A stretch of 64,000 nucleotides of DNA from Trichosphaerium sp. ATCC 40318 (taxonomy: Eukaryota; Protista; Tubulinea). Numbering within the stretch: the first letter of the stretch is position 1; every line of letters starts with the position of its first letter. The DNA lies in NCBI GenBank assembly GCA_038496445.1, contig JALMLS010000621.1, forward strand, positions 1 to 64,000. Reading direction: 5' to 3'. The notes beneath the pieces were generated by a model. The model searched no databases. It saw nothing but the letters and a program-made list of their open reading frames with translations, and was not told where the DNA came from. Positions 8,604 through 22,829 of this stretch are shown here, piece by piece. The translations under genes and the position numbers were made by a program.

Positions 8604-11600
8604 TCATAAGCAACTGCACTGAAATTGAAGTGAGCCCTTGAGAGAGCAATACTACCAATAACGCACGGTTATGGACCTTAGATTTTTCTTGCCCTTGATG
8701 TTGAAATTGTACTATAATGTGGTTTTAACGGGTTCTATTCCAGACCATTTTCAATATTAATGAGCTAGAATAATCATTGTGCACTCCGTTTGGTGACGGA
8801 TCGATTGAGCTTTGGGACTTCATTGAGATATCCTTTTTTGGAGGGTTCGAGTTAGTGCTCTCTTCACGTTAAAATACACTTCTTTTCTCAAAACAGATAG
8901 GTAATATCAACTCATATGTCGTCTATCTACGTTGTCGCATTTTTACTTACAGCTGAAATATTGTGCGTACCTTCACACGAGTAATTGAGGGATAACCTGC
9001 ATAATTTTTCGGCTGGCTATCTCTATGCTTTTTTTACCACTTTATTTGTACCTGTCACATGACTCAACAAAAAACTCTTTTGGACTAAAACCAACTTTTA
9101 TTTAACGTGTGAGGTTGTGTACAGCTGCTGCAAGAAAGACAAGGTAGTCCATTTGGATGGCTGGCCCAAACCACGCTTTTGATAATTTTTTGAATTTATT
9201 CTTTATCTGGCCAAATGGGCACTCCACTCGTGCACGGAAAGTTCTGATAGCTGCATTGTACTTGCGCTGTTTCTTAGTGAGTACTTTGATACTTCTCCCA
9301 GTTTTTGTCTTGGTGCTATTCCGTGGTTCTTTTAAATTAGCATGTATTGTTAAAGTTTTAAAGTATTGCTGTGCCTTTCTGAAGTGGTTGTCAGCAATGA
9401 TTGTTGCACCTTCAAAGGTCCAGTACTAAAATGAAAACGGGATTTTTGTAGAGAATCACCACAAAATCTCTAAAATTGGTGATTTTGTAGTGATTTCCAC
9501 CAAAAATCTCATTTTCCTCCAGAGATTTTTGAGAGATTCTCTCGAAAATCTCATTTGGTGAGAATTTATGGAAAACTCTCTTTTGATTTTGAGAATTTTG
9601 GAGAAAATCTCTTTTATTTTGAGAATTTTGGAAAAAATCTCTTTTTGTTTGAGAATTTTGGAAAAAATCTCGTTCAATAGAAGATCATATGTACAAATGG
9701 TTTTATTGAACAAGATTGTCATCAAAGTTTCTGTTATCAATTGGGTATAGATTGTTGATAGTAATTTACCAAATAAATGTTTTCATCAACTGGATCTGGA
9801 ACAATGCATGCCAGTTTAAACACCATAAACAGCGGAACGCAAGCTAAGCATTTTTGACGTTGTAAACTAACATTTAAATTAATACATATATCACACTTAT
9901 AATCACGTACGACACCAAGTTTGTTGCAGCATCGTATCTACTTTGAGGATCAACGAGAGTATACAATCTAAAACAATTAAGCTATTTTACTATGAAAAAC
10001 AGTCTCTAACCTTCCAAACACATAAATCTCTTTGCTTTGTTGTAATTGAATGATATGTGTTGTTTCAAGATAAATGCAATCACTTCTACTTTCATATTTG
10101 TTATTTAGTCTCCAAGTTTTGAAACATGTGTTTTTCTTTGGTGACGTAAATATTGACATTTCTCGAACTACGCATTTTGCTGAAGAATAGAGAAATACAG
10201 GATAATGTATGTCTATTGCTTGTGCTATCGAAGTATCTCGAATGAGTGCATCCATCATATCTGAGGATAAATGATGTAATTTTTTTTTACCATCTATAAA
10301 TTGTGAAAAGAAGTTTGGTTTTTAAAAAACAATGTACGTAAGGTCCAAACAGATTCTACATTGTTGTGTACTCTTTGTGCAATATAAGTATTCTGTATTG
10401 AAGGCTTTTTTTTCCCATTCAATGATATGAACGTTGAAATATGGTTTTGAAAGTCACCAGCTAAATATGATGAAATGGAATCACATTCTCTGGCCATAAT
10501 ATCGCTGTCTTTTGTTATTGTCAGGTATACAAAGACAACGTACTCAATTTTTTTGCATCCTTTGGTGCTGTGTTTCCAATTTTTGATTTTTTTATGCTTT
10601 GATTCACAACTGTAAGTGCTATAAGGGCAAGTCATTAGCTGTAATAGTACACAAAAAAAAAGTTAAATTTCTTTACTTACCTATAATGTTTTGGCATACC
10701 AAACATCTTTATTGACTCTTCGTGGTGAAGTATAGCATGGAAATTTGGTGTTTTAATGTTGACTTCTAGTAACACCTTGCAATCAATACAATTTCAAGGT
10801 AGTTAAGTACCATTATTAAACAGTACCTGGCAAGTATTTTCTAATTTTTTTTTTTAGTCTTTTAGCTTCTTTTGTAACGCGGTACAAGTGTTGTGCCTTT
10901 AAAAAATCCTTGGACATAAGAGCAACATATCCTAACAATACTTGCCTATTGTACATATTATATACGTCGTAGCGTTCTAAATGCGTACCATGTCTTTAAG
11001 ACTTTTTCAGAACAAAGTGGCTTGAAAACAAACAATGCCATTTGTAGAAATGATCTAACGTCAGTACCATCCCATTTTTTCTGTACTGTACAATTTCCTT
11101 GAGAGTCCCATATTGGTTTTATTCTGTATACAAATGAGTATGTATTAAACATGATACAAACGCACTTTGCAATTACCACATGTTTTTGACTTTTATACCA
11201 CTCGATTGCATCTTTTATTTTGGTTCTAGCTATCGCCTTCACTTCTTCATTTGTTTCTAACAGCGCAAATGTCCCTATCATGACTTGTTTTGATATACCC
11301 AAAATAATGTTATGAAAAGGACAAAAAGGAGTGTGTTGAAAGATGTCAAAGTTATGTAGAAACAAGAATGGTGACTAAAAAATGTAAGCAATTGTAAAAA
11401 AAGATTTAATTGCAAAGCAAAAAAGTCATGCCCATGCATTTAAACAAAGATTGTGTAAACTGTAATCTGTATTGGCCAATCGATAGAGCTTTTTTGCTTC
11501 TTGGGCTGTTCGTAATGTTTGACATTCTTGAAGATCAGCCATTGCCTCTTTAGTCAATTTGCAAACTCGGCATGGTAGATTTGCTGAGAATGATTTTATG

Positions 11601-14600
11601 GCTATAATTGTTAGATCATATTGCTTGTATTACCGTACAAACTACTTTACATGTTCCTGGCATATCACCTAATAGCTTTTCAAGTCGAAGATAAACTGTA
11701 AATGTCTATGCAATGGTTAGAATGTAAATAAGAGAGTTGAATATACTTTGTTCAATTTTGGAGAAAACATTTCAATTCCATCGTATAACAGTTTGAGATC
11801 ATTCACAACATAACTCATTGCGTCTTCCATTTCAACATCTGTGGGAAGTACCATTAAAGTCATTTTTCCTTGCATTTCATCGCTATTAGGCATGTTCCAT
11901 ATCACAAGGTACATTGGTCCCAAACTTTCTTTTTTATCATAAGTAAAATCGTCATGACACAAATAAGCTACTAAAGATAAGAGAGTGTGATAAATGATAA
12001 CAATGTTAGGATACCTGCTAATTTGATATTGTTAGGTATGTTAGATACATCATCATACATATCCTTGTATCTAATTCCTGTTTCAGGCCCAGAAAAAATG
12101 TGTATTTTTTGTACATCTCCATTTACGTCAACCCTTGAAACTTTATGAGGATACTTGGAATTGTCATTGATGGTATTTCGATCATTTAAATGATACATGA
12201 GCAATCTAACATATTCAGATGGAGGGATGTAAGGAATTTCTATGGGTTTTTTCTTTTTTCTTTTTACGAATATTTTTTTCATTGTCAATTTTGGAGTGTA
12301 CTAGTAAAAATTAAATGGATACACTTGGATCATGGTATTATTCGTACTCTTTGAAATGCTTGTTTAGCCAACGATGGTGTTAGTTTAGTTTGATTTAATT
12401 TAATGTCAATGGAAGGTGTGAGAGAGGAGAATGCATTTGTACTTGAGGTGGACAATAATTTCGTTGTTATATTATAAAATTGCAACCACAGTTTTACATT
12501 TTCATCTGATAATTGTTGCTCTAATTGTAGCTTTCGTACAAGATATAACAGTTTATCAACGCTTGATGCCTTGAAAATAGATGGCATTGTTGTTTGTAGC
12601 CTGTTTTGTAATTCTAATTGCATTTGTTTTGTTACGTAAGTTGATGGAAATTGTTGTTGAGGTTGGATAGATTGTTGGCGTTGAATACTGACACTGTAAT
12701 TGCTCATTAAAATGGCGCTTTGCTGTTGAAAATCGTAAACATCTTCCATTAGTAAATCATCGTCATTTTGTAGGTTATACGCGGATTCGTTGGCTGTGAT
12801 ATCACAAGAAACAATTTCAGAGAGATTCTAAAAGAAAATTAGTTAAAACACTGAAAAAGAAGTAATTTTAATGCCAGCACGTTAGATTCGTTTGTTTGGG
12901 TGTAACGAAAGCGTAATGAAAAACATTTGTCACTTTTTTGATGACGAGCTAAATTAGAACGTGTCACAAGTGAACCACAAAGAGGACAGTTGATTGCGTT
13001 CATTTGTAAACACAATTTTACACTACATGTACTTTATTCAGTCAAACTGTTTAGACGTTGTTACAATTCTCATTTTTACATAATCTTTGAGCAATATAAT
13101 CTATTTTATACAAAGAGAATTACCTTATCCACGAATGGATCACATAGATGTAAGGTGTGGATCAGTTTCAACCAATCCTTTTGAAACCAATAACGTTTTG
13201 CAGTTTTTCTAAAGCCCTAAATCCTGAATCTGACAAGAAGCATGCTGAACAGACATGGTTGACGGAGAAAATACAGTTAAAGTCTCTTACCATTATATTG
13301 ATATTGTTCACTTCCATATTTAGTTGCTTGAAAAACAACTTACTTTCACTAGCCCTTGCAAGCGCGTAAACAACGCCAATACAAACCTTGATGTCATTTT
13401 TCGTGAAAAGTGCAGAGACATAATGTCTCTAAGGATCAATAATCTCTTCTGAGATTGTCACTGACTTCACAGTGAGTATAATTGTATCGCTATGTCAGAT
13501 ACTGGGCTGTGGAGCCCAAGTCACATTAAATTGGCTAAAACAGGAAGGAAATCCTATAACAAAAGGGTTAATAGCCTTTTTACACGCAAAAAGACGTTGT
13601 CAATGCACCTTTGTGACCACAAGTACTTTTAACAAGTGAAACACCATTTTATTGCCCGCACCTGCTTTCCAAGCCTTGCTAGTGCGACCATTGGCATTTC
13701 AGCCTATATTAATCACTACCAATGCATTCTTTGAACTGACATGTGTAACACGGAGGAGTGAGCTTGATACTGGGATTATATAGATGCCAGTAAAGCGTTT
13801 TAGCCAGACATGGGAACTTCATAAACACTTTGTACTTGAGTTGTACCATGTGGCGTTGTATTGTAGCACATAAATAAAAAAAACAAAGACAAAATTTGAT
13901 TAAGGCGTTTATTTTATGCACTTTTAGTCTCAGCACTTTTGCAATCATCTTCAATACCATCATCAAGCGCCTGCTCATCATTTGCGTTCACAGTGTCTAT
14001 TGCATTACCCATTTGCTGCGCATTATACTCATCTGCAGGTTCTGTACGCAGCTGGTCCATGATAGCGTGTATAAAGCTTGTAAAGCTGCGTTCTAGACCT
14101 GCATCGTCAGTGTTTGGGTCAAATCCGTTTAATTCACAAAATTCTATCCAGAATTGTTGGAAAACGGGGTTTCTACGCGACGTTGGAGGTGTGGAGTGCT
14201 AAATTGCGTTTTAGGGAGAAAAGTTGGAATACGCGCTCAAATTACGCGTACATCTTCATTGCGTTCAGGTACGGACATGGTGCAAGGTGTTTAGCGTATT
14301 TAATACAATAAACGTTGTTGCAACTTAAAAACTCAGAAACTTAAACAATACAGGAGGGCGCGGTCATTTATTGGTACATGTTTAAAGATAGCTCTGGCAT
14401 ATGAGCTAATAGGTTAAATGTTTTTTTTTGTTTCTAGTGACTAACACTAAAATTAGAACAACAACACAAAAAAATTGAAAAAATTGATTGTTCGAGCAAA
14501 CGCACGTTATGTATTTTCCCTCCAATTTTTTTTTCGGTTACAATGAACGCTAAAGTACGTTGCTTACCCCTAAATCTAGTTAATGCATTAAACAACAGTG

Positions 14601-17600
14601 ACTACGTACGTTTGCAATTGCAAATGATGTTCCGTAACTGTACACAGGCAAACAACCTACTGACAACGCTTGCCAAAGCCACGCAGGCAAAAGGAGGCCA
14701 ATCCTTTTCGGGGCACAGGCAAACGATGTCGAGTTGGCTTGTTTTTAGTTGATATGAAGTCATTGAAAAGTCATGACTTTTCATATCAGCCAAAAAACAC
14801 TAAAATGATGAATCGGAAGCGCAAATGTACGTATTTAGTGCAAAGAGCACATACAAACACAAAAAACGTACGTTTCTTTTTCTTTAAGGCGTTTTGTCCT
14901 AAAAAAAGTTATTTATCCCTTATTTTGCGTGTAATCAACGCTAAACGCTATATCTACGCGTATTTTGGCCATTTTATTCACTTGTGCACAATTTATGTGC
15001 TAAAACATTGTTTGTTTTCCGTTTTGCGCATTATCGACACTAAACGCTCTATCTACGCGTATTTTGGCCATCTTATTCACTTACGCACAATTTATGTGCT
15101 AAAACATTGTTTGTTTTTCATTTTGCGCGTTATCGACACTAAACGCTCTATCTACGCGTATTTTGGCCATTTTATCTCCTTGTCTATTTTTTTTGTTGTT
15201 ATATCTCTGTTTGCTGTTGTCTTATTATTTGTAGGTTTAGCCTTGGACAATCTCTTACTGTGTGGTTGGTTGTACTCACGTTTATGTAGATAATATGAAT
15301 CCTAGTGTTAGAAGAAGGACAAGGCGAAAACGAACTGCCATTTTAGCAACAATAAAAAAACTGTTGCAAGAAGAAGTGCAGGTATTGTCAAAGAACAAAG
15401 ATGCCACCATTGCAGTCCTTTCTTTTAAACCTGTTACCTCTGATCTATATGGCTCAATAGTTTATACCTGTGACAAGATTGAAAACACTGTGTAAGAGAA
15501 TTTTGGTGTTTTATCTCATTTCATTTTAGGTTTTTCAGTATGTTTGATGTGAGAAAAGGGATTGTTTCATTTTACGGAAAAGAGTCAAAAGATTCGCAAC
15601 AAATATTTGACGTTTGTAGAGACAGTAAGTGCACACATTCTCTAATTGGTTATTTATTTACTTGTGATGTTGTAGGGCATTATGTTGCCAACAATGATGG
15701 TGTCAGTGATGATACCTTCAATGACGCCAATGACAAAGTCAGCCTCAGAAATGATGGCAGCTCCAAAGATGGCTTCAATGACTGTGGCAGCGTCAGTAAC
15801 AACAACAGCTCCATTGACAGCTCCAATGACGCCAATGACAGTGTCAGTGATGACAATGACTCCAATGACGGCTGTGACAGTGTCAGTAACGATGACAGCT
15901 CCAATGACGCCAATGACAGTGCCAGTGATGCCAATGACGGCTGTGACAGTGTCAATAACAATGACAGCTTCGATGGTCGTGCCAATGACTGTGACAGCGT
16001 CAATAACAACAACAGCTCCAATGATGCCAATGACAGTGCCAGTGATGACTGTGACTCCAATGGCGGCTGTAACAGTGTCAGTAACGATGACAGCTTCAGT
16101 GTCAGCTCCAATGACGCCAATGAGAGTGCCAATGATGTCAATGACTCCAATGACGGCTGTGACAGTGTCAGTAACGATGACAGCTCCAATGACGCCAATG
16201 ACAGTGCCAGTGATGTCAATGACTCCAATGACGGCTTTGTCAGCATGAATGACAATGACAGCTCCAGTGGCAGCGTAAATGACGCCAATGAGAGTGCCGA
16301 TGATGTCAATGACTCCAGTGACGGCTTTGTCAGCATGAATGACAATGACAGCTCCAGTGGCAGCGTAAATGACACCAATGAGAGTGCCGATGATGTCAAT
16401 GACTCCAATGACGGCTGTGACAGTGTCAGTAGCGATGACAGCTCCAATGACGCCAGTGACAGTGCCAATGATGCCAATGACTCCAATGACGGCTTTGCCA
16501 GCATGAATGACAATGACAGCTCCAGTGGCAGCGTAAATGAGAGGTATTATTGTCAACAACTCTATTTTGTATTAATTTGAAAATAGTGGCACACAACTTG
16601 CAGCTGTCCAAAAACAAGCGCTGATAAACATCTTGAAAGAACAATTTAGTGTTGAACTGACAGCAAACTGTCCTATTCGTGCCATCACTGCAACAATCTT
16701 AGGCTTGGATGATGTTGAGACCAAAAAATTGAATGCCTTGTTCTTGCAGTAAGTAGTTTTTTTTTGTGGTAATTCATTTCTTTGACGTCAATTAAGGCCT
16801 GAAGCAAAAGCTAAACAACACATCATGAAAACAGTTAAACACAAATTGCTTAACATCAGAAACGTGTGGACACCAGCAACAAGACTCATCATAAACGACG
16901 TTGGTATGGATCAAATGAGCATTGAAACAACAACAACAGGACGGAAACATCCAACTGGCAGGTATGTAATACTTAGAGTTATTGTATTTTATTGACAGGC
17001 TCAGGATTACGTCAGCTATTCATCCCAAAGATGGCGGTCACATATTCTCTGGCAATCTGTTTACATGTAATATGGAAACAGACGCTGTTCCTGTTGGCAT
17101 AATACCTCTTATTTTTTTATGTTTAACACACGCTGAAATCAAAAATGGGTACAACTTAAAGGAAATAGCCCAAAAGAATGTCAAGAACTCATTTGACTTA
17201 TCTATTTCTTGTCATGTGTATCCAGGAGTATCAGCTGATGTTAAAACAAAGAATAAGAAAGCAACAGGCTTAGTATATCACCAAGACAAAAGCCCGTCTT
17301 ATGGCAACCAAAAAGAGGTAAATTTGATTTTTATTGTAGCTATTTAACCAATTTCGTAGGTTGCTGTACTCACTGTATATGACTTTGCTGAAGTAAGCTA
17401 TCCCAAAAAACTTATTGATCCTAACATAGAGTGCTTTGACAAGTTTCAGTTACATTATAGTGTAATGAATGGCAAAACGCCTGTTTCAACCACTAAAATT
17501 TCATCAACTCCAAACAGCGTCATTTACGCGCCTCCAGAATGTCAACAAGGCAATGTAAATCACAAGTACAAAACCGTTATGGTTGAATGCCATTGATATT

Positions 17601-20600
17601 CTTTTTAGAGCCACCATTTCAAGCGAGTATGTAAAGAAAATATGGGCCATAAGAGTGTTCAACTACGCATTGTTCCGTGAAGAGTGTGCAAACAACAAAA
17701 TTGGAAGATATGACATCTTCAAGCCATTGACAGACCTTTTGTGTGATCCACATCTGAAGGAAGCTGTCATTCGACAATTTGGAGGTGAAAAAAAAAAGCC
17801 AAAACTGAAATCAAACCCAAAAAAAGATGATACTGTTGAAGGTGATGTCGCTTCTGTCAAGTGCGAGCAACGATCAACTTGAACAATGTGGTTACATTAA
17901 TTTTTATTTAGACAATGTCAGCAAGTACGAGATACTGTAGACAGATTTAATAACATGAGGATGTGCTTGTTTAAAAATCCTTTACAGATATATTGTATTG
18001 ACTGCAACAAAACGTTTGTTAATTTTGCAAACCATTTGAGAGACAGCGACACCTGCGCTAAAACTGGTTATTACGGACCATTTTTGCGAAACAAAAAGGC
18101 TTGTGTCTGTGTCAATGTAGCGGAGCTATCAATATGCAGATTTAGACGGAATAGGTATGCTGTGTTGAAATTTTCCAAAACTAATGTTATTTTTGCAGTT
18201 GTACTGACTTTGCAAGCAACGGAATAGCAGCAAAGTATCCAGTAGACTCTTTGAAGATTGATTTTGCCAGTGCCAGATCTTGTAATTTCTTGTTTGAAAC
18301 AGATGAGTTGACGTACTTTACCACAACTGGCATAGGCGGAATGGAAATAATACGAAACAAAGCTCAAAGAACTCACCCAGATGTACCAGCTCCTTCAAGA
18401 CAGAAACAACAATTTTGATTGGACTTGTGCTTCAAATACAGAAATCCCGTGCGCGTGTTGGCTGTTTGTGGAGTCAATTACGCCAGTATTGGTGTTTGGG
18501 TGTGTTGTTTTAAAAGGTACATAAGTCTGCAACTGATGTAATTGTAATATACACCATTTAGAGGCTATACAATGAAGAATAATTGCAACGTCACAGTGTA
18601 TTCATTTTGTCCTTTGAAAATGTACGTCATTGGAGATCCTCAGGCTATAGAAGCAGCAGTGGACAGTAAAGAAACTGCCAGATTGAAACCTATATTGTAA
18701 TAGTCAACGCATGTAGCAAATCATAATAAATAGAATCCATGTCATCGCTTCCGTCTAGAAAAAGGCGTCGCATAGTAAATACTATCTCAGAACTTGATGT
18801 GGATGAAATTGATTTGAAATTGGTGGTAGAACTTTGCCAAAGTACCTCTATCACTCCGAATGATTTAGAACAGTTCTTATAATTGTAGATGGCTTTAAAA
18901 CAATACTCCGAGTTTTAAAAGCTCAAGATGACCTACTTTCAATATTAAAGTGCGATTTAAACAAAACAGCGAACAACGTAGAAGCTTTGAAGCTCTCTTT
19001 GGGAAGTAAGTCAAAAGCAAAAGTACGTTCTGAACATTTTCAACTATTGCTGTATCGTTTGTTTACCTTGTGTGCCAGGCTTGGAAAGGTGCTATGCTTC
19101 AAAAATATCTGTGGACAACAGGGAAGTTTGCTGATATTGAACGCGGAGCCAAACTGTTAGTTGATATACAACAAGTGTACAAAGAAATGACGCTAAGCAA
19201 TGATGTATCTCAATGTGCGAACGAAATGGACAAATACAGAAAAGGGGTTTTTAGACCTTTTACCAAAATTTACAATCACTTTATGGAATGCGCATCTACT
19301 TCTGCAGAACATATAGAGACAAACAGTACGAAATGTGATTTTATTTGGTTTTTTTTTAGCCTTACAATACTCTTTAGCGCATAAACTGGTGGCATGTGCT
19401 GAAATTACGCTTAGTAAATGGTTTAAAGACCCGTCTGATGGCTTTTATTTGCAAGCGTTCGATTACATTAAATCGGTATTTTTGGCGTTTTTTCTTGTTA
19501 TTGAAATGATACTAATACGTTTGTGATAGAAGATAAAAATGTATTTGGACAAGAACAACGCCCACCCATTCAACCAAGAGACTTACAATCAATTTAAAAC
19601 AGAAAATCCTGATGTTGTTCGCATTACGTTCGCTGTACACAATATTGTTACTGGCTCATTTTTTAATTAGCGACTGTGAAAACTATCGACACAATAAGTG
19701 TATCTTCATCTTTGAACCAATTGGGCCTAGATTAACCCAGTATGATATGCCAGAGCCAGCATCACTACGTCAACAACAAACGCAGGTTAGTTATTGAATT
19801 TTCTGGTTAAATCAAAAACTTAATTGGTTTAGCATTCAAACAGACGTCCAACACAAACACATCATACTAATATGAACCAAATTGATGTTGTTTCAAACCT
19901 ACGATCAAATGTCGCCTTAAATCAACAACGTGAAAGTGCACAAAATGAACAAAACAACCAAGCCTCCAATCAACCTCGTAGAACTCCCTCAAATGAACGC
20001 TACAGTCAAAGCCGAAATCAATCTCACAGAGTTTCTTCAAATGAACGCTACAGCCAAGGCCTGAATCAACTTGAAAGGACTCCTTCTGGTGAACGCTACA
20101 GTCAAAGCCGGAATCAATCTCACAGAGTCTCTTCAAATGAACGCTACAGCCAAGGCCTGAATCAACTTGAAAGAACTCCTTCTAGTGAACGCTACAGCCA
20201 AAGCTTGGATCAACTTCGCAGAACTCCCTTTAATGAACGTTACAGCCAAAGCTCAATGCAACATTTGACAACTGGCATTCAACATCAAAGAGTAACATCA
20301 AACCAAAATCACAGAAGACAACGTTCAATCTCACAACATGACAACCATGTACATGAGCAATCTGACTTGGAGCACAGTAGTTCATCACATGATGAGTCTT
20401 CTAGGGTATATTATTTTCATTCTTTGTTGTTTTTCACTAACTTTTCAATAGAATTACCAATTGTCATTTCCTAACAAAAAACAGCCTGGCTCTGGCTCTT
20501 TGTTGGATTCAAAAGATGAAGAATCTTCAGACATACACGTAAGATGAATCTTTACTGTGACATTTTAATGTATTTTTAGTTCTTTATACCAAAAACCACT

Positions 20601-22829
20601 GAAATGTATATTGAAGGCGACTACGACAAAACGCCATTGTTTGTAGGGGATTTTTTGCCCTTATTTTGTGGCAAAGATTACTTATTTACTGCCAATGTCC
20701 TCTTTGCTCTTATAAAAAGAGTTTACAATGCAAAGTTGCTTGATAACAGCATTTTTCCGCCACCTACAAAGGTATGACAGTATCAAAAAAAAATGATGCT
20801 AACTAACGATGTTAGGCTTTGTCTCATGTGAGTACAAGTTCTTGGATCGCACCAATTCCTGTTCAACACTTAGAAAACAACGACGTCATAATTTGCAACG
20901 CCCCCACACTTGATGGGCTTGGAATCCAAAAAAAATGGTAAAGTATATTCAAGTAAATATGCTTTAACATTTATTGTAGGTTTTGGACAGCACTCATAAA
21001 ACACAAAAAACAATATGTCTTTGTAGGTATGTTATTTGTATTATTTAAAATTGTTTACAAGCATTACGTTGTTAATCATTTGCTTAGCATCAAGCACATT
21101 ATTTGAACAAAGCAAAAAGGTTGTTTTACAATCGTTATCTGTTCCAAAAACTAAAATAGTCTATGACTTTACCTTACGAAATTGCAACACACACGGAGGA
21201 ACAGGCATAGGAATTATCAAAGCAATTACAAAATATGATAATTCAAAAGGCAAAATCTTTTACAATCAAATAAGCACCATGCAAGGCAAGCACGAACAAT
21301 TAAAAAAGTATACAGAGTACTTTAAAATTAAAAAAAATGGAGGACAACTACTACAACAATACAGTTTGTGTACGTGATAGCTCTTACCATTTGCTGAATG
21401 CGAATTTTCTTACTTGTTATTGTTTTAGTACAATTTGATGCTACTACATTGAATGATATTTTTTCAGACTATGCTGATGACACTAGCGATGACTATTGTT
21501 TTGACAAGTGATGTATTTGTATATTGTTTTGTACAATTGTTGTAGTAAATTTTGTTGAGAAACGTCTTCAATTTTTTTGAGAAAACACTAGAGATTTCCT
21601 TGAAAAAACACCAGAAATTTCTTTGAGAAAACACCAGAGATTTCCTTGAGAAAACACCAGAGATTTCCTTGAGAAAACACTAGAGATTTCCTTGAGAAAA
21701 CACCAGAAATTTCCTTGAGAAAACACCAGAGATTTCCTTGAGAAAACACCAGAGATTTCCTTGAAAAAACACCAAAGATTTCCTTGAGAAAACACCAGAG
21801 ATTTCCTAGAGAAAACACCAGAGATTTTCCAAAGAAAACACTAGAGATTTCCTTGTGTTTTTCACTGGTGATTTTCTAGAGAATTCTCAGGTTATTTTAG
21901 GAAGAAATTCACCGAGATTGGTGGTCCAAAATCTCTGAGATTTTAGGGGGTGAATCTCTTGATTTTTCTCAATTTTTTTTAGTACTGTCCTAGTAAAGGG
22001 CTCTCGCATTACCTCAAGGAATGTGCTGTCATACACCTTTGGAGAGTACCCACCATAGATCTTTCGAAAATGGCCTTTTCCATCCATTATGGCCATGTAT
22101 CGTCTTCCAGGAGCATTCAGTTTGTATGACCATAGGTCACTCTTTCTAGATGTGGTGCGTTTGCCTGTTAGCCTAAAGTCTGAAGAATCCATCCATAAAT
22201 TAACAGCTTTAAGTAGTTCCGGTTTCTTAACGTTCCTTGCTGCCGCTGTCCAGTCGCTGGCTGTACCCACCACAAGCACTGTATTTGCCCAGGCATAAAG
22301 AACTTCTCTAATTTTGTACACGTTGTGTTGTACAGAATTGTTGCCTATTTTGATCCAATTTTTTGTTTTTTGGCGTAAGTGAGACATGCCAATACCAACC
22401 AAATCAAGGTAAAGTGTAAAGACCAACATTTTGGCTAAAAAACCACGTGATCTCTCAAGAGCCCACAAAATAGGCTCATGCTTTTCAACATATGCCTGCA
22501 TTGCCCAAAACGTTGTTCGGGAAAGTTTTTTGTGCACGTGGTCACGAGCTGAGTAGTAAGAAAGCATTTTATGATAGAGATAAGTGAACAAAAAAATGTG
22601 CGACTTATCCACATAGAGATAGCCAGCCAAAAATTTTTGCGGGTTATCCCTCATTATTTAAATGTTTGACTTGGAGGGCACGCAATAACATAAATACCAC
22701 CCTCTTTTGTTGATTAATCACGTGATAACTGATGCCTTTACCAAAATCGGCGCTCACGCAAATGCTCACTGTGATAAATATGCCAACCGCGAATATCATC
22801 GCATAGCTTCTTGGTAGTCTTGTTAGCAA
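8604..22829 (-). CDS. Putative small secreted protein whose first intron contains the nested transposons
   Basis: Exon 1 (~22800-22697) has a signal-peptide-like MIFAVGIFITVSICVSA followed by a GT donor. Small AG/GT-bounded exons at ~8970-8951 and ~8830-8604 read openly to QFQCSCL*. The joins are tentative. Confidence 0.35.
9102..9418 (-). pseudogene. Harbinger-type DDE transposase, 3' part (interrupted)
   Basis: TFEGATIIADNHF (second D)...YNAAIRTFRARVECPFGQIKNKF (E)...AAAVHNLTR*; missed by the ORF track. Confidence 0.85.
9440..9672. repeat. Left subterminal repeats (AAATCTC motif; ~30-bp tandem units)
   Basis: Repeated TTTTGAGAATTTTGGArAAAATCTC. Confidence 0.85.
9737..13003 (-). CDS. EnSpm/CACTA-like DDE transposase with N-terminal zinc finger, multi-exon
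   Basis: MNAINCPLCGS..NLARHQKSDKC; LCHDDF..SLGPMYLVIWNMP; LGDMPG; LPCRVC; CPFHNIILG; PNFHAILHHEESIKMFG; CESKHKKIK. Confidence 0.8.
13050..14278 (-). CDS. Transposon cargo gene 1, unknown function (multi-exon, possibly decayed)
   Basis: MSVPERNED spliced to HSTPPTSRRNPVFQQFWIEFCELNGFDP..; acidic segment; downstream exons uncertain. Confidence 0.4.
14923..15175. repeat. 99-bp tandem repeat, ~2.5 copies
   Basis: Units start at 14923, 15022 and 15121 (TTTTGCG...CTAAACGCT.TATCTACGCGTATTTTGGCCAT). Confidence 0.9.
15294..17950 (+). CDS. Transposon cargo gene 2 with an Asn/Asp/Ser low-complexity repeat domain, multi-exon (may start at 14543)
   Basis: Basic N-terminus MNPSVRRRTRRKR, GT-AG-bounded exons, ~280-aa ND/DS repeat exon (15677-16543), further open exons to ~17950. 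Confidence 0.55.
17955..18700 (+). CDS. Transposon cargo gene 3, small Cys-rich/zinc-finger protein (possibly pseudogene)
   Basis: YCIDCNKTFVNFANHLRDSDTC zinc-finger-like motif; a later exon has an in-frame stop. Confidence 0.35.
18739..21511 (+). CDS. Transposon cargo gene 4: 16-aa NERYSQ repeats plus a possible degenerate Ulp1-like C-terminal domain, multi-exon
   Basis: ATG 18739 with NLS-like RKRRR; series of GT-AG exons; 48-bp coding repeats at ~19992-20250; TGA at 21509-21511. Confidence 0.55.
21570..21900. repeat. Right subterminal repeats (22-23-bp GAGATTTCCTTGAGAAAACACCA units)
   Basis: About a dozen head-to-tail copies; core GAGATTT is the reverse complement of the left-end AAATCTC. 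Confidence 0.92.
21988..22567 (-). pseudogene. Harbinger-type DDE transposase, 5' part (interrupted)
   Basis: LWMDSSDF (first D), WSYKLNAPG, GGYSPKVYDS. The frame continues at 9418 once the insertion is removed. Confidence 0.85.

Follow-up and report, generated by a model that had tools for sequence, protein, structure and literature searches.

The stretch of Trichosphaerium sp. ATCC 40318 DNA analysed here (the window: 64,000 nucleotides, positions 1 to 64,000 of contig JALMLS010000621.1, here C129) contains, at positions 9421-21987, a single DNA transposon of ~12.6 kb. An original prediction, made from the letters of the window alone, had placed a large CACTA-like element there, and this observation was confirmed. 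The element opens at 9421 with CAGTACTAAAA and closes at 21987 with TTTTAGTACTG, with TC on each side. Its terminal inverted repeats (TIRs) are 11 bp long and lie at 9421-9431 on the plus strand (CAGTACTAAAA) and at 21977-21987 on the minus strand, reading TTTTAGTACTG on the plus strand. The terminus sequence of the element is CAGTNNTAAAAT, and its sister copies share the first 17 bases of the left end.

The gene interrupted by the element has other copies, at 94-100% identity, on contigs C13, C401 and C57. The paralogues on C13 and C401 (94-99% identical) are uninterrupted and read AAAGGTC joined directly to CTAGTAAAGG, with one TC where the window has TC-element-TC. As these paralogues show the empty site, the exact ends and the 2-bp target site duplication (TSD) are fixed, the two TC copies lying at 9419-9420 and 21988-21989. 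When the element and one TC were excised in silico, an open reading frame (ORF) of 328 amino acids was restored, the 3' half of which matched Pfam DDE_Tnp_4 (PF13359) with E=1.5e-6, above the cut-off. Therefore, the insertion hit a PIF/Harbinger-type element within its transposase gene, the 3' half of which now occupies 9105-9420 and the 5' half 21990-22657, both on the minus strand. The predicted boundaries, 11-bp TIR and 2-bp TSD were all borne out by the empty sites and by the restored ORF. The window copy is young, since the interrupted gene is 94-100% identical to its paralogues; given the same three copies, the interrupted PIF/Harbinger-type family is also young.

Immediately inside the ends, two subterminal arrays carry the same motif in inverted orientation, each described here on the plus strand. 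The left array (9464-9671) has six copies of AAATCTC, within 9464-9665, and contains a 30-bp tandem repeat at 9559-9671. The right array (21577-21943) has ten copies of GAGATTT, within 21591-21937, most of them in a 23-bp tandem repeated 12 times at 21577-21855. Elsewhere in the window, just 7 and 2 copies of AAATCTC and GAGATTT were counted, respectively, so that motif counts and tandem-repeat mapping agree with the inverted arrays originally described. The same array design was found in two sister copies, on C92 and C5, with GGATTT every 23 bp at one end and AAATCC at the other; in both, the 23-bp-periodic GGATTT array is at the end equivalent to the right end of the window copy.

Between the arrays, the transcription units diverge from the centre outwards. 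The minus strand carries a DDE transposase gene (9737-13003) of ~15 exons and introns of 37-62 nucleotides, as determined by comparison with sister copies. The introns are typically of the form GTACG...YAG; seven of the mapped donors read GTACG and are thus CpG-bearing, amid CpG-poor coding sequence (observed/expected ratio, o/e, 0.57-0.69). The predicted protein has an N-terminal CxxC...H...C finger and the motifs D, D, C(2)C, H(3)H and E in this order: D1 as CHDDFTYD in the exon at ~11973-11747, D2 as LGDMPG at 11705-11639, C(2)C as PCRVC, H(3)H as NFHAILHH at 10765-10681 and the catalytic E as STYSCESKH from 10618, all on the minus strand. The order is kept in every copy inspected, and the transposase motifs listed in the original prediction (DDF, GD, CRxC, H..LG, PxFH..H, ESKH) are all present and conserved in at least 26 other genomic copies. 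In the D1 exon, these further copies are 40-73% identical.

On the plus strand, segments within 16576-21508 are conserved and collinear with a sister copy on C84, at 30-60% amino-acid identity, and the DNA of this sister is only 52-69% identical to the window. Splice logic resolves these segments into two genes, A and B. Gene A (15295-18700, ~10 exons, from comparison with C84 and C409) would encode a basic N-terminus and a low-complexity repeat stretch rich in Ser, Asn and Asp, followed by ~600 conserved residues. Gene B (18739-21511, ~10 exons, from comparison with the sisters) would encode a protein with an RKRRR start resembling a nuclear localisation signal, a helical region, SNERYSQ-type repeats and a conserved C-terminal region containing HGGTGIGIIK. 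Thus, the intron-containing genes said to diverge from the transposase are present and conserved in sisters, but the conserved genes on the plus strand are two, instead of the approximately three counted there, and so are the conserved accessory genes, instead of "3-4 unknown cargo genes".

The central divergent region (13004-15294), from the transposase start to the gene A start, contains a 99-bp tandem at 14922-15175. Its ORFs, including those of a second minus-strand gene proposed at 13100-14200, are not conserved in the C84, C92 or C5 sisters, and the Pfam search of the region was blank; that second gene was therefore not upheld. The region probably consists of the promoters and 5' untranslated regions of the divergent genes. 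Copies of a 97-bp segment of it (13755-13851), 88-90% identical, were also found on C444, C110 and C66, with no other part of the element nearby; the segment may have been captured as a fragment or may represent another small repeat.

Sister copies with the same design were sought throughout the genome (70 Mb in 642 contigs, G+C ~37%), and both diverged full-length sisters and short derivatives were found. The element therefore belongs to a mobile family. The exact 17-base terminus occurs nine times genome-wide. Three short derivatives of 703-773 bp (C228, C30 and C273) retain both ends at 91-98% identity without the interior, and an additional, fourth right end was found at a contig edge. The largest sister is 23,036 bp long (C84:137324-160359), is flanked by a TA duplication and, from reading of the translation, is inserted in frame within a leucine-rich-repeat-like ORF. 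Its transposase gene is interrupted by ~8 kb in which another transposase copy, rearranged and more diverged, and a segment resembling gene B are found; the insert is therefore taken as a nested insertion of a relative. The sisters on C5, with a TG duplication, and on C92 are 14,982 and 8,838 bp long, respectively. A perfect 2-bp duplication was found at four of seven insertions, as TC in the window, AA in C30, TA in C84 and TG in C5.

Other genomic matches have different structures. A fragment at C581:1185-2555, 82-88% identical, fuses window positions 11816-12124 to 13395-13739 and continues into 14097-14670; it is an internal-deletion derivative that lacks the 5' exons of the transposase. 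On C409 (26,276 bp) and C445, matches to the element are arranged as mirror images, and on C409 the mirrored gene A copies centre on position 13,138, exactly half of the contig; both arrangements are probably hairpin assembly artefacts. The terminus variants CAGTGGTAAAATGAAAA and CAGTAGTAAAATMAAAA have dozens of genomic occurrences, several of them paired ~1 kb apart, and CAGTGGTAAAATGAAAA faces CAGTAGTAAAATAAAAA at that distance in, for example, C120:1831-2839, C88:3830-4857 and C49:224040-225036. Such pairs point to a short non-autonomous family of higher copy number, mobilised by a related transposase.

The distribution of the two accessory genes differs. Gene B is present in every sister examined, at a constant position and orientation relative to the transposase, and its exons were detected in C84 and its nested copy, C92, C5, C2 and C629. 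Gene A is known only in the window, in C84 and in the copies on the palindromic contig C409. The core element thus consists of the transposase and gene B, and one sub-lineage acquired gene A in addition. Synonymous sites have reached saturation between the window and C84 (proportion of synonymous differences, pS, 0.66-0.72), whereas the non-synonymous divergence of the transposase, gene A and gene B amounts to 0.19, 0.34 and 0.29, respectively. The ratios of non-synonymous to synonymous divergence (dN/dS), which are rough as they cover alignable segments only, are 0.07-0.16, 0.16-0.26 and 0.18-0.27, respectively. Judged by these values, genes A and B are kept under purifying selection.

The transposase was compared with protein families exon by exon, and the power of these searches is limited by the size of the queries. 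Neither Transposase_21 (PF02992) nor Plavaka (PF18759) matched any transposase exon at E<=0.1, and PF02992 scanned over the whole genome did not match the locus. When 1.84 billion proteins were searched with a D1-exon profile, seven matches were obtained, five of them credible, and four of these five were exon-sized fragments. The only long relative, P0005 (616 amino acids, from a metagenome contig, E=1.6e-4), carries all five catalytic motifs; it too gave no match to PF02992 or PF18759 at E<=0.1. Six exon hidden Markov models (HMMs) matched P0005 in strict order, at residues 79-139, 155-170, 172-214, 251-286, 391-409 and 418-435. The D1 exon scored 32 bits, whereas none of 2000 shuffles exceeded 6; the C(2)C exon scored 16.4 bits, and tblastn agreed with these collinear matches. 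Word-based protein searches with the D1-exon profile and with P0005, run with a length window that excluded full-length relatives, were blank or returned the query itself, and no relative was found among IMG/VR viral contigs. The ESM Atlas model of P0005 aligned with clusters dominated by Plavaka or Transposase_21 with template-modelling (TM) scores of 0.65-0.69 over 444-473 residues, and the language-model features of P0005 scored 0.94-0.95 against clusters of these types; this comparison describes the fold predicted for the relative and not for the protein of the window.

The ordered D, D, C(2)C, H(3)H and E motifs are the signature of the CMC (CACTA/EnSpm-Mirage-Chapaev) group, and the CMCT clade, in which EnSpm-Mirage-Chapaev is joined by Transib, Plavaka, ESTA and Lanisha, has CA..TG termini and TSDs of 2-5 bp (PMC12730594). 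In the present family, the motifs occur as DDF, LGD, PCRVC, NFHAILHH and CESKH in all copies inspected, and the termini are CAGTA...TACTG with a 2-bp TSD read from the empty sites. The terminus had been called non-canonical, but CA..TG ends and a 2-bp TSD fall within the range described for this clade (PMC12730594, PMC6004678), and CACTA families with 2-bp TSDs are on record (PMC6004678). In contrast, a strict EnSpm/CACTA element would have CAC..GTG termini and a 3-bp TSD in place of CAGTA and 2 bp, and similarity to the curated models PF02992 and PF18759 was not found. On the strength of its motifs, its ends and the indirect fold link, the element very probably belongs to the CMC clade, as a cut-and-paste transposon of a lineage outside the current family models. 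The label "EnSpm-type transposase" was too specific: the CMC motif set on which it was based stands, but the assignment to EnSpm is not supported, Transposase_21 and Plavaka matching neither the exons nor P0005.

Two other readings of the element as a whole were weighed. If the transposase came from a DDE superfamily outside CMC, its motifs would resemble those of the clade by convergence; the failure of the two Pfam models and the count of only five credible relatives in 1.84 billion proteins speak for this. However, the order and spacing of the five motifs fit the definition of the clade (PMC12730594), the CA..TG termini, the 2-bp TSD and the subterminal arrays fit CMC as well, and the predicted fold of P0005 aligns over ~450 residues with both Plavaka and Transposase_21 clusters, so that convergence is regarded as improbable. 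The plus-strand ORFs, for their part, could be captured fragments of host genes (Pack-type cargo) that are decaying and serve no function of the element. The in-frame TGA in the window copy of gene A, the low-complexity repeats that occupy parts of both genes and their lack of a family assignment are all compatible with such an origin. Against it, the same genes are found in the same order and orientation in sisters with saturated synonymous sites and dN/dS of ~0.2, gene B accompanies every sister examined, and whole-genome protein searches detected genes A and B only in such elements or in contigs with pieces of them, with no host paralogue of either gene. Because they are conserved among diverged copies at that dN/dS, the accessory genes are not decaying captured fragments of the host, and the Pack-type origin is very improbable; the original prediction thus withstood its own condition for refutation, that the cargo be decayed pieces of host genes. 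The reading retained is thus that of a CMC element with its own conserved helper genes.

For gene B, a role can be proposed by analogy. CACTA elements need a second protein to bind their subterminal repeats, and these proteins are particular to each family, without homology between families (PMC2613891). Because gene B alone always accompanies the transposase and the 23-bp-periodic array, it probably encodes a TnpA-like helper.

The nature of gene A was approached through its conserved residues. In the three copies available, the pattern Y-H-x-D, ~73 residues, N-H-(K/R), 17 residues, (I/V)-R-x-F is kept, a spacing typical of HxD...H...R dioxygenases (TET/JBP/AlkB), and the C-terminal part of gene A retains YFTTTGxGG, NPVRVL and GLWVCC, reminiscent of YTGxGG, PVRV and YDGxY in SRA domains. 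Gene A could thus be a DNA-modification module, formed by a distant TET/JBP-like 2-oxoglutarate/Fe(II) dioxygenase, a zinc finger and a SAD/SRA-like domain that would bind 5-methylcytosine; with this module, the element would remove or mask host methylation. The genomic setting is compatible with this: the host has a gene for a C5 DNA methyltransferase as well as several genes with canonical SAD/SRA domains (C7:645518-646681; C547, C42, C91/C615), a Pfam scan gave no canonical Tet_JBP match in its genome, and the element genes are moderately depleted of CpG (o/e 0.57-0.78 versus 0.90 in the flank). A signature in which CpG is retained only in spaced ACGAT words was seen neither in the element nor in C409. 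The TGA of the window copy, which lies at an Arg codon of the sister, could have arisen by a CpG-to-TpG change only from an ancestral CGA codon. Moreover, in fungi, TET/JBP genes travel with transposons of several superfamilies (PMC12730594). On the other side, Tet_JBP (PF12851) did not match gene A, not even in a genome-wide scan at E=10. Pfam SAD_SRA (PF02182) matched the C84 copy with E=0.027 and 14.7 bits, against a cut-off of 30.7; it did not match the window and C409 copies, and its genome-wide scan missed gene A too, so that a match below threshold in one of three copies does not make gene A a member of the SAD/SRA family. Searches of gene A against Pfam, against PDB-sequence profiles (in three pieces) and with a word-based profile were blank or gave no match above the cut-off, AlphaFold2 (AF2) modelled the C-terminal ORF with a predicted local distance difference test (pLDDT) score of 33, and an intron splits the putative dioxygenase core. 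Four conserved residues at plausible spacing may also arise by chance. A DNA-modification module is therefore possible but unlikely, and slightly less credence still is given to its most specific form, a divergent fusion of a TET/JBP-like dioxygenase and an SRA-like reader that would find and oxidise 5-methylcytosine on the element's own DNA as an anti-silencing device. The anti-silencing functions put forward in the original prediction thus stay a conjecture, for which the hints are at the level of motifs.

A further candidate for gene A was a Fanzor/TnpB-like RuvC nuclease. Fanzors are carried by several eukaryotic transposon superfamilies, and the NDVGMDxMxIET segment of gene A, which is followed downstream by a CxxC finger, loosely resembles the RuvC-I motif. 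However, Pfam OrfB did not match, the conserved RuvC-II Glu and RuvC-III Asp motifs were not recognised in the expected order, and there is one CxxC pair only. Furthermore, gene A does not lie beside an element end, where the guide RNA would be expected, and an Rfam search of the whole element was blank. Nuclease cargo of this kind is accordingly considered most unlikely.

The window copy itself carries two lesions. In a conserved exon of gene A, an in-frame TGA at 18416-18418 (plus strand) replaces the Arg codon of C84, whereas the frames of C84 and C409 are open, and no alternative intron removes it. In the transposase, the donor of the intron at 11431-11375, which follows ...LNAW, reads GC (11430-11431, minus strand) where six sister copies have GT; if this intron was retained, the frame would stop ahead of the H block and the catalytic E. 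From these changes, the window copy probably makes no full-length gene A protein, its transposase may be compromised, and it may depend on another copy.

Several points weigh against a CMC element with a TnpA-like helper as the reading of this locus. No matching 2-bp flank was present at three of the seven insertions. No other copy with >90% identity and an intact gene set, which could have supplied transposase to the young short derivatives, was found in the genome. The gene models were built on conservation and GT-AG logic. Pfam gave nothing above noise for transposase, gene A, gene B and central-region pieces from four copies, nor any match for P0005, its one match at the locus being DDE_Tnp_4 in the interrupted gene. 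The tie to named CMC families goes through the motifs and the predicted fold of one metagenomic relative. Finally, no DNA-binding domain was recognised in gene B, and the AF2 model of its 175-amino-acid exon was poor (pLDDT 46).

With a CMC element and its helper as the preferred reading, the following mechanism can be proposed. The element was inserted into the Harbinger-type transposase gene with duplication of 2 bp; its DDE transposase would recognise the CAGTA... termini and cut and rejoin the DNA. The product of gene B would act as a functional analogue of the TNPA of En/Spm, pairing the ends through its binding to the subterminal repeats. Gene A, acquired in one sub-lineage, would be dispensable for this core reaction, its role most likely being to modulate host silencing. 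The window copy would need a sister copy to supply the functions of gene A and of the transposase in trans.

With this element, the CMC group gains a very divergent lineage, from an amoeba, that family models overlook. Its architecture combines a two-gene core, formed by the transposase and a family-wide helper gene beside a 23-bp-periodic array, with a third gene in one sub-lineage. As a single genome offers comparisons between elements with and without gene A, end-only derivatives and empty sites, the family lends itself well to studying the contribution of accessory genes to DNA transposons. Were the DNA-modification reading of gene A true, the gene would be an anti-silencing device that evolved in parallel to those of TET-carrying fungal transposons, its host being equipped with a methyltransferase and SRA proteins but lacking a canonical TET, and this would be a case of a transposon countering DNA methylation outside fungi.

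Among known systems, the Plavaka elements of fungi (PlavakaB) share with the amoeba element TSDs of 2-3 bp and termini starting with CA (CATCA..TGATG), and some of them bear an extra enzyme gene, TET/JBP (PMC12730594); the predicted fold of P0005 also aligns with Plavaka clusters. They differ in that the Pfam Plavaka model is unmatched here, the host is an amoeba and the accessory genes have no detectable similarity to TET/JBP. Mirage and the CACTA-like families with 2-bp TSDs, such as ENS1_Cis of Ciona, are alike in TSD length and in their membership of the CMC group (PMC6004678, PMC12730594), but their termini are reported as CAC..GTG, a comparison made by description only. The plant En/Spm (CACTA) elements are likewise large, have short TIRs starting with CA and asymmetric inverted arrays of a short motif in both subterminal regions, and encode a DDE transposase whose C(2)C and H(3-4)H motifs fall between D2 and E, together with a second protein; they too have internal-deletion derivatives that keep the ends only (PMC2613891, PMC12730594). 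In contrast to En/Spm, the present element has CAGTA instead of CACTA and a TSD of 2 bp instead of 3 bp, and is not matched by Transposase_21. The second protein of En/Spm is produced by alternative splicing of a single transcript, whereas here it would be encoded by a separate, divergently transcribed gene without similarity to TNPA, and the amoeba element carries, in addition, a third gene.

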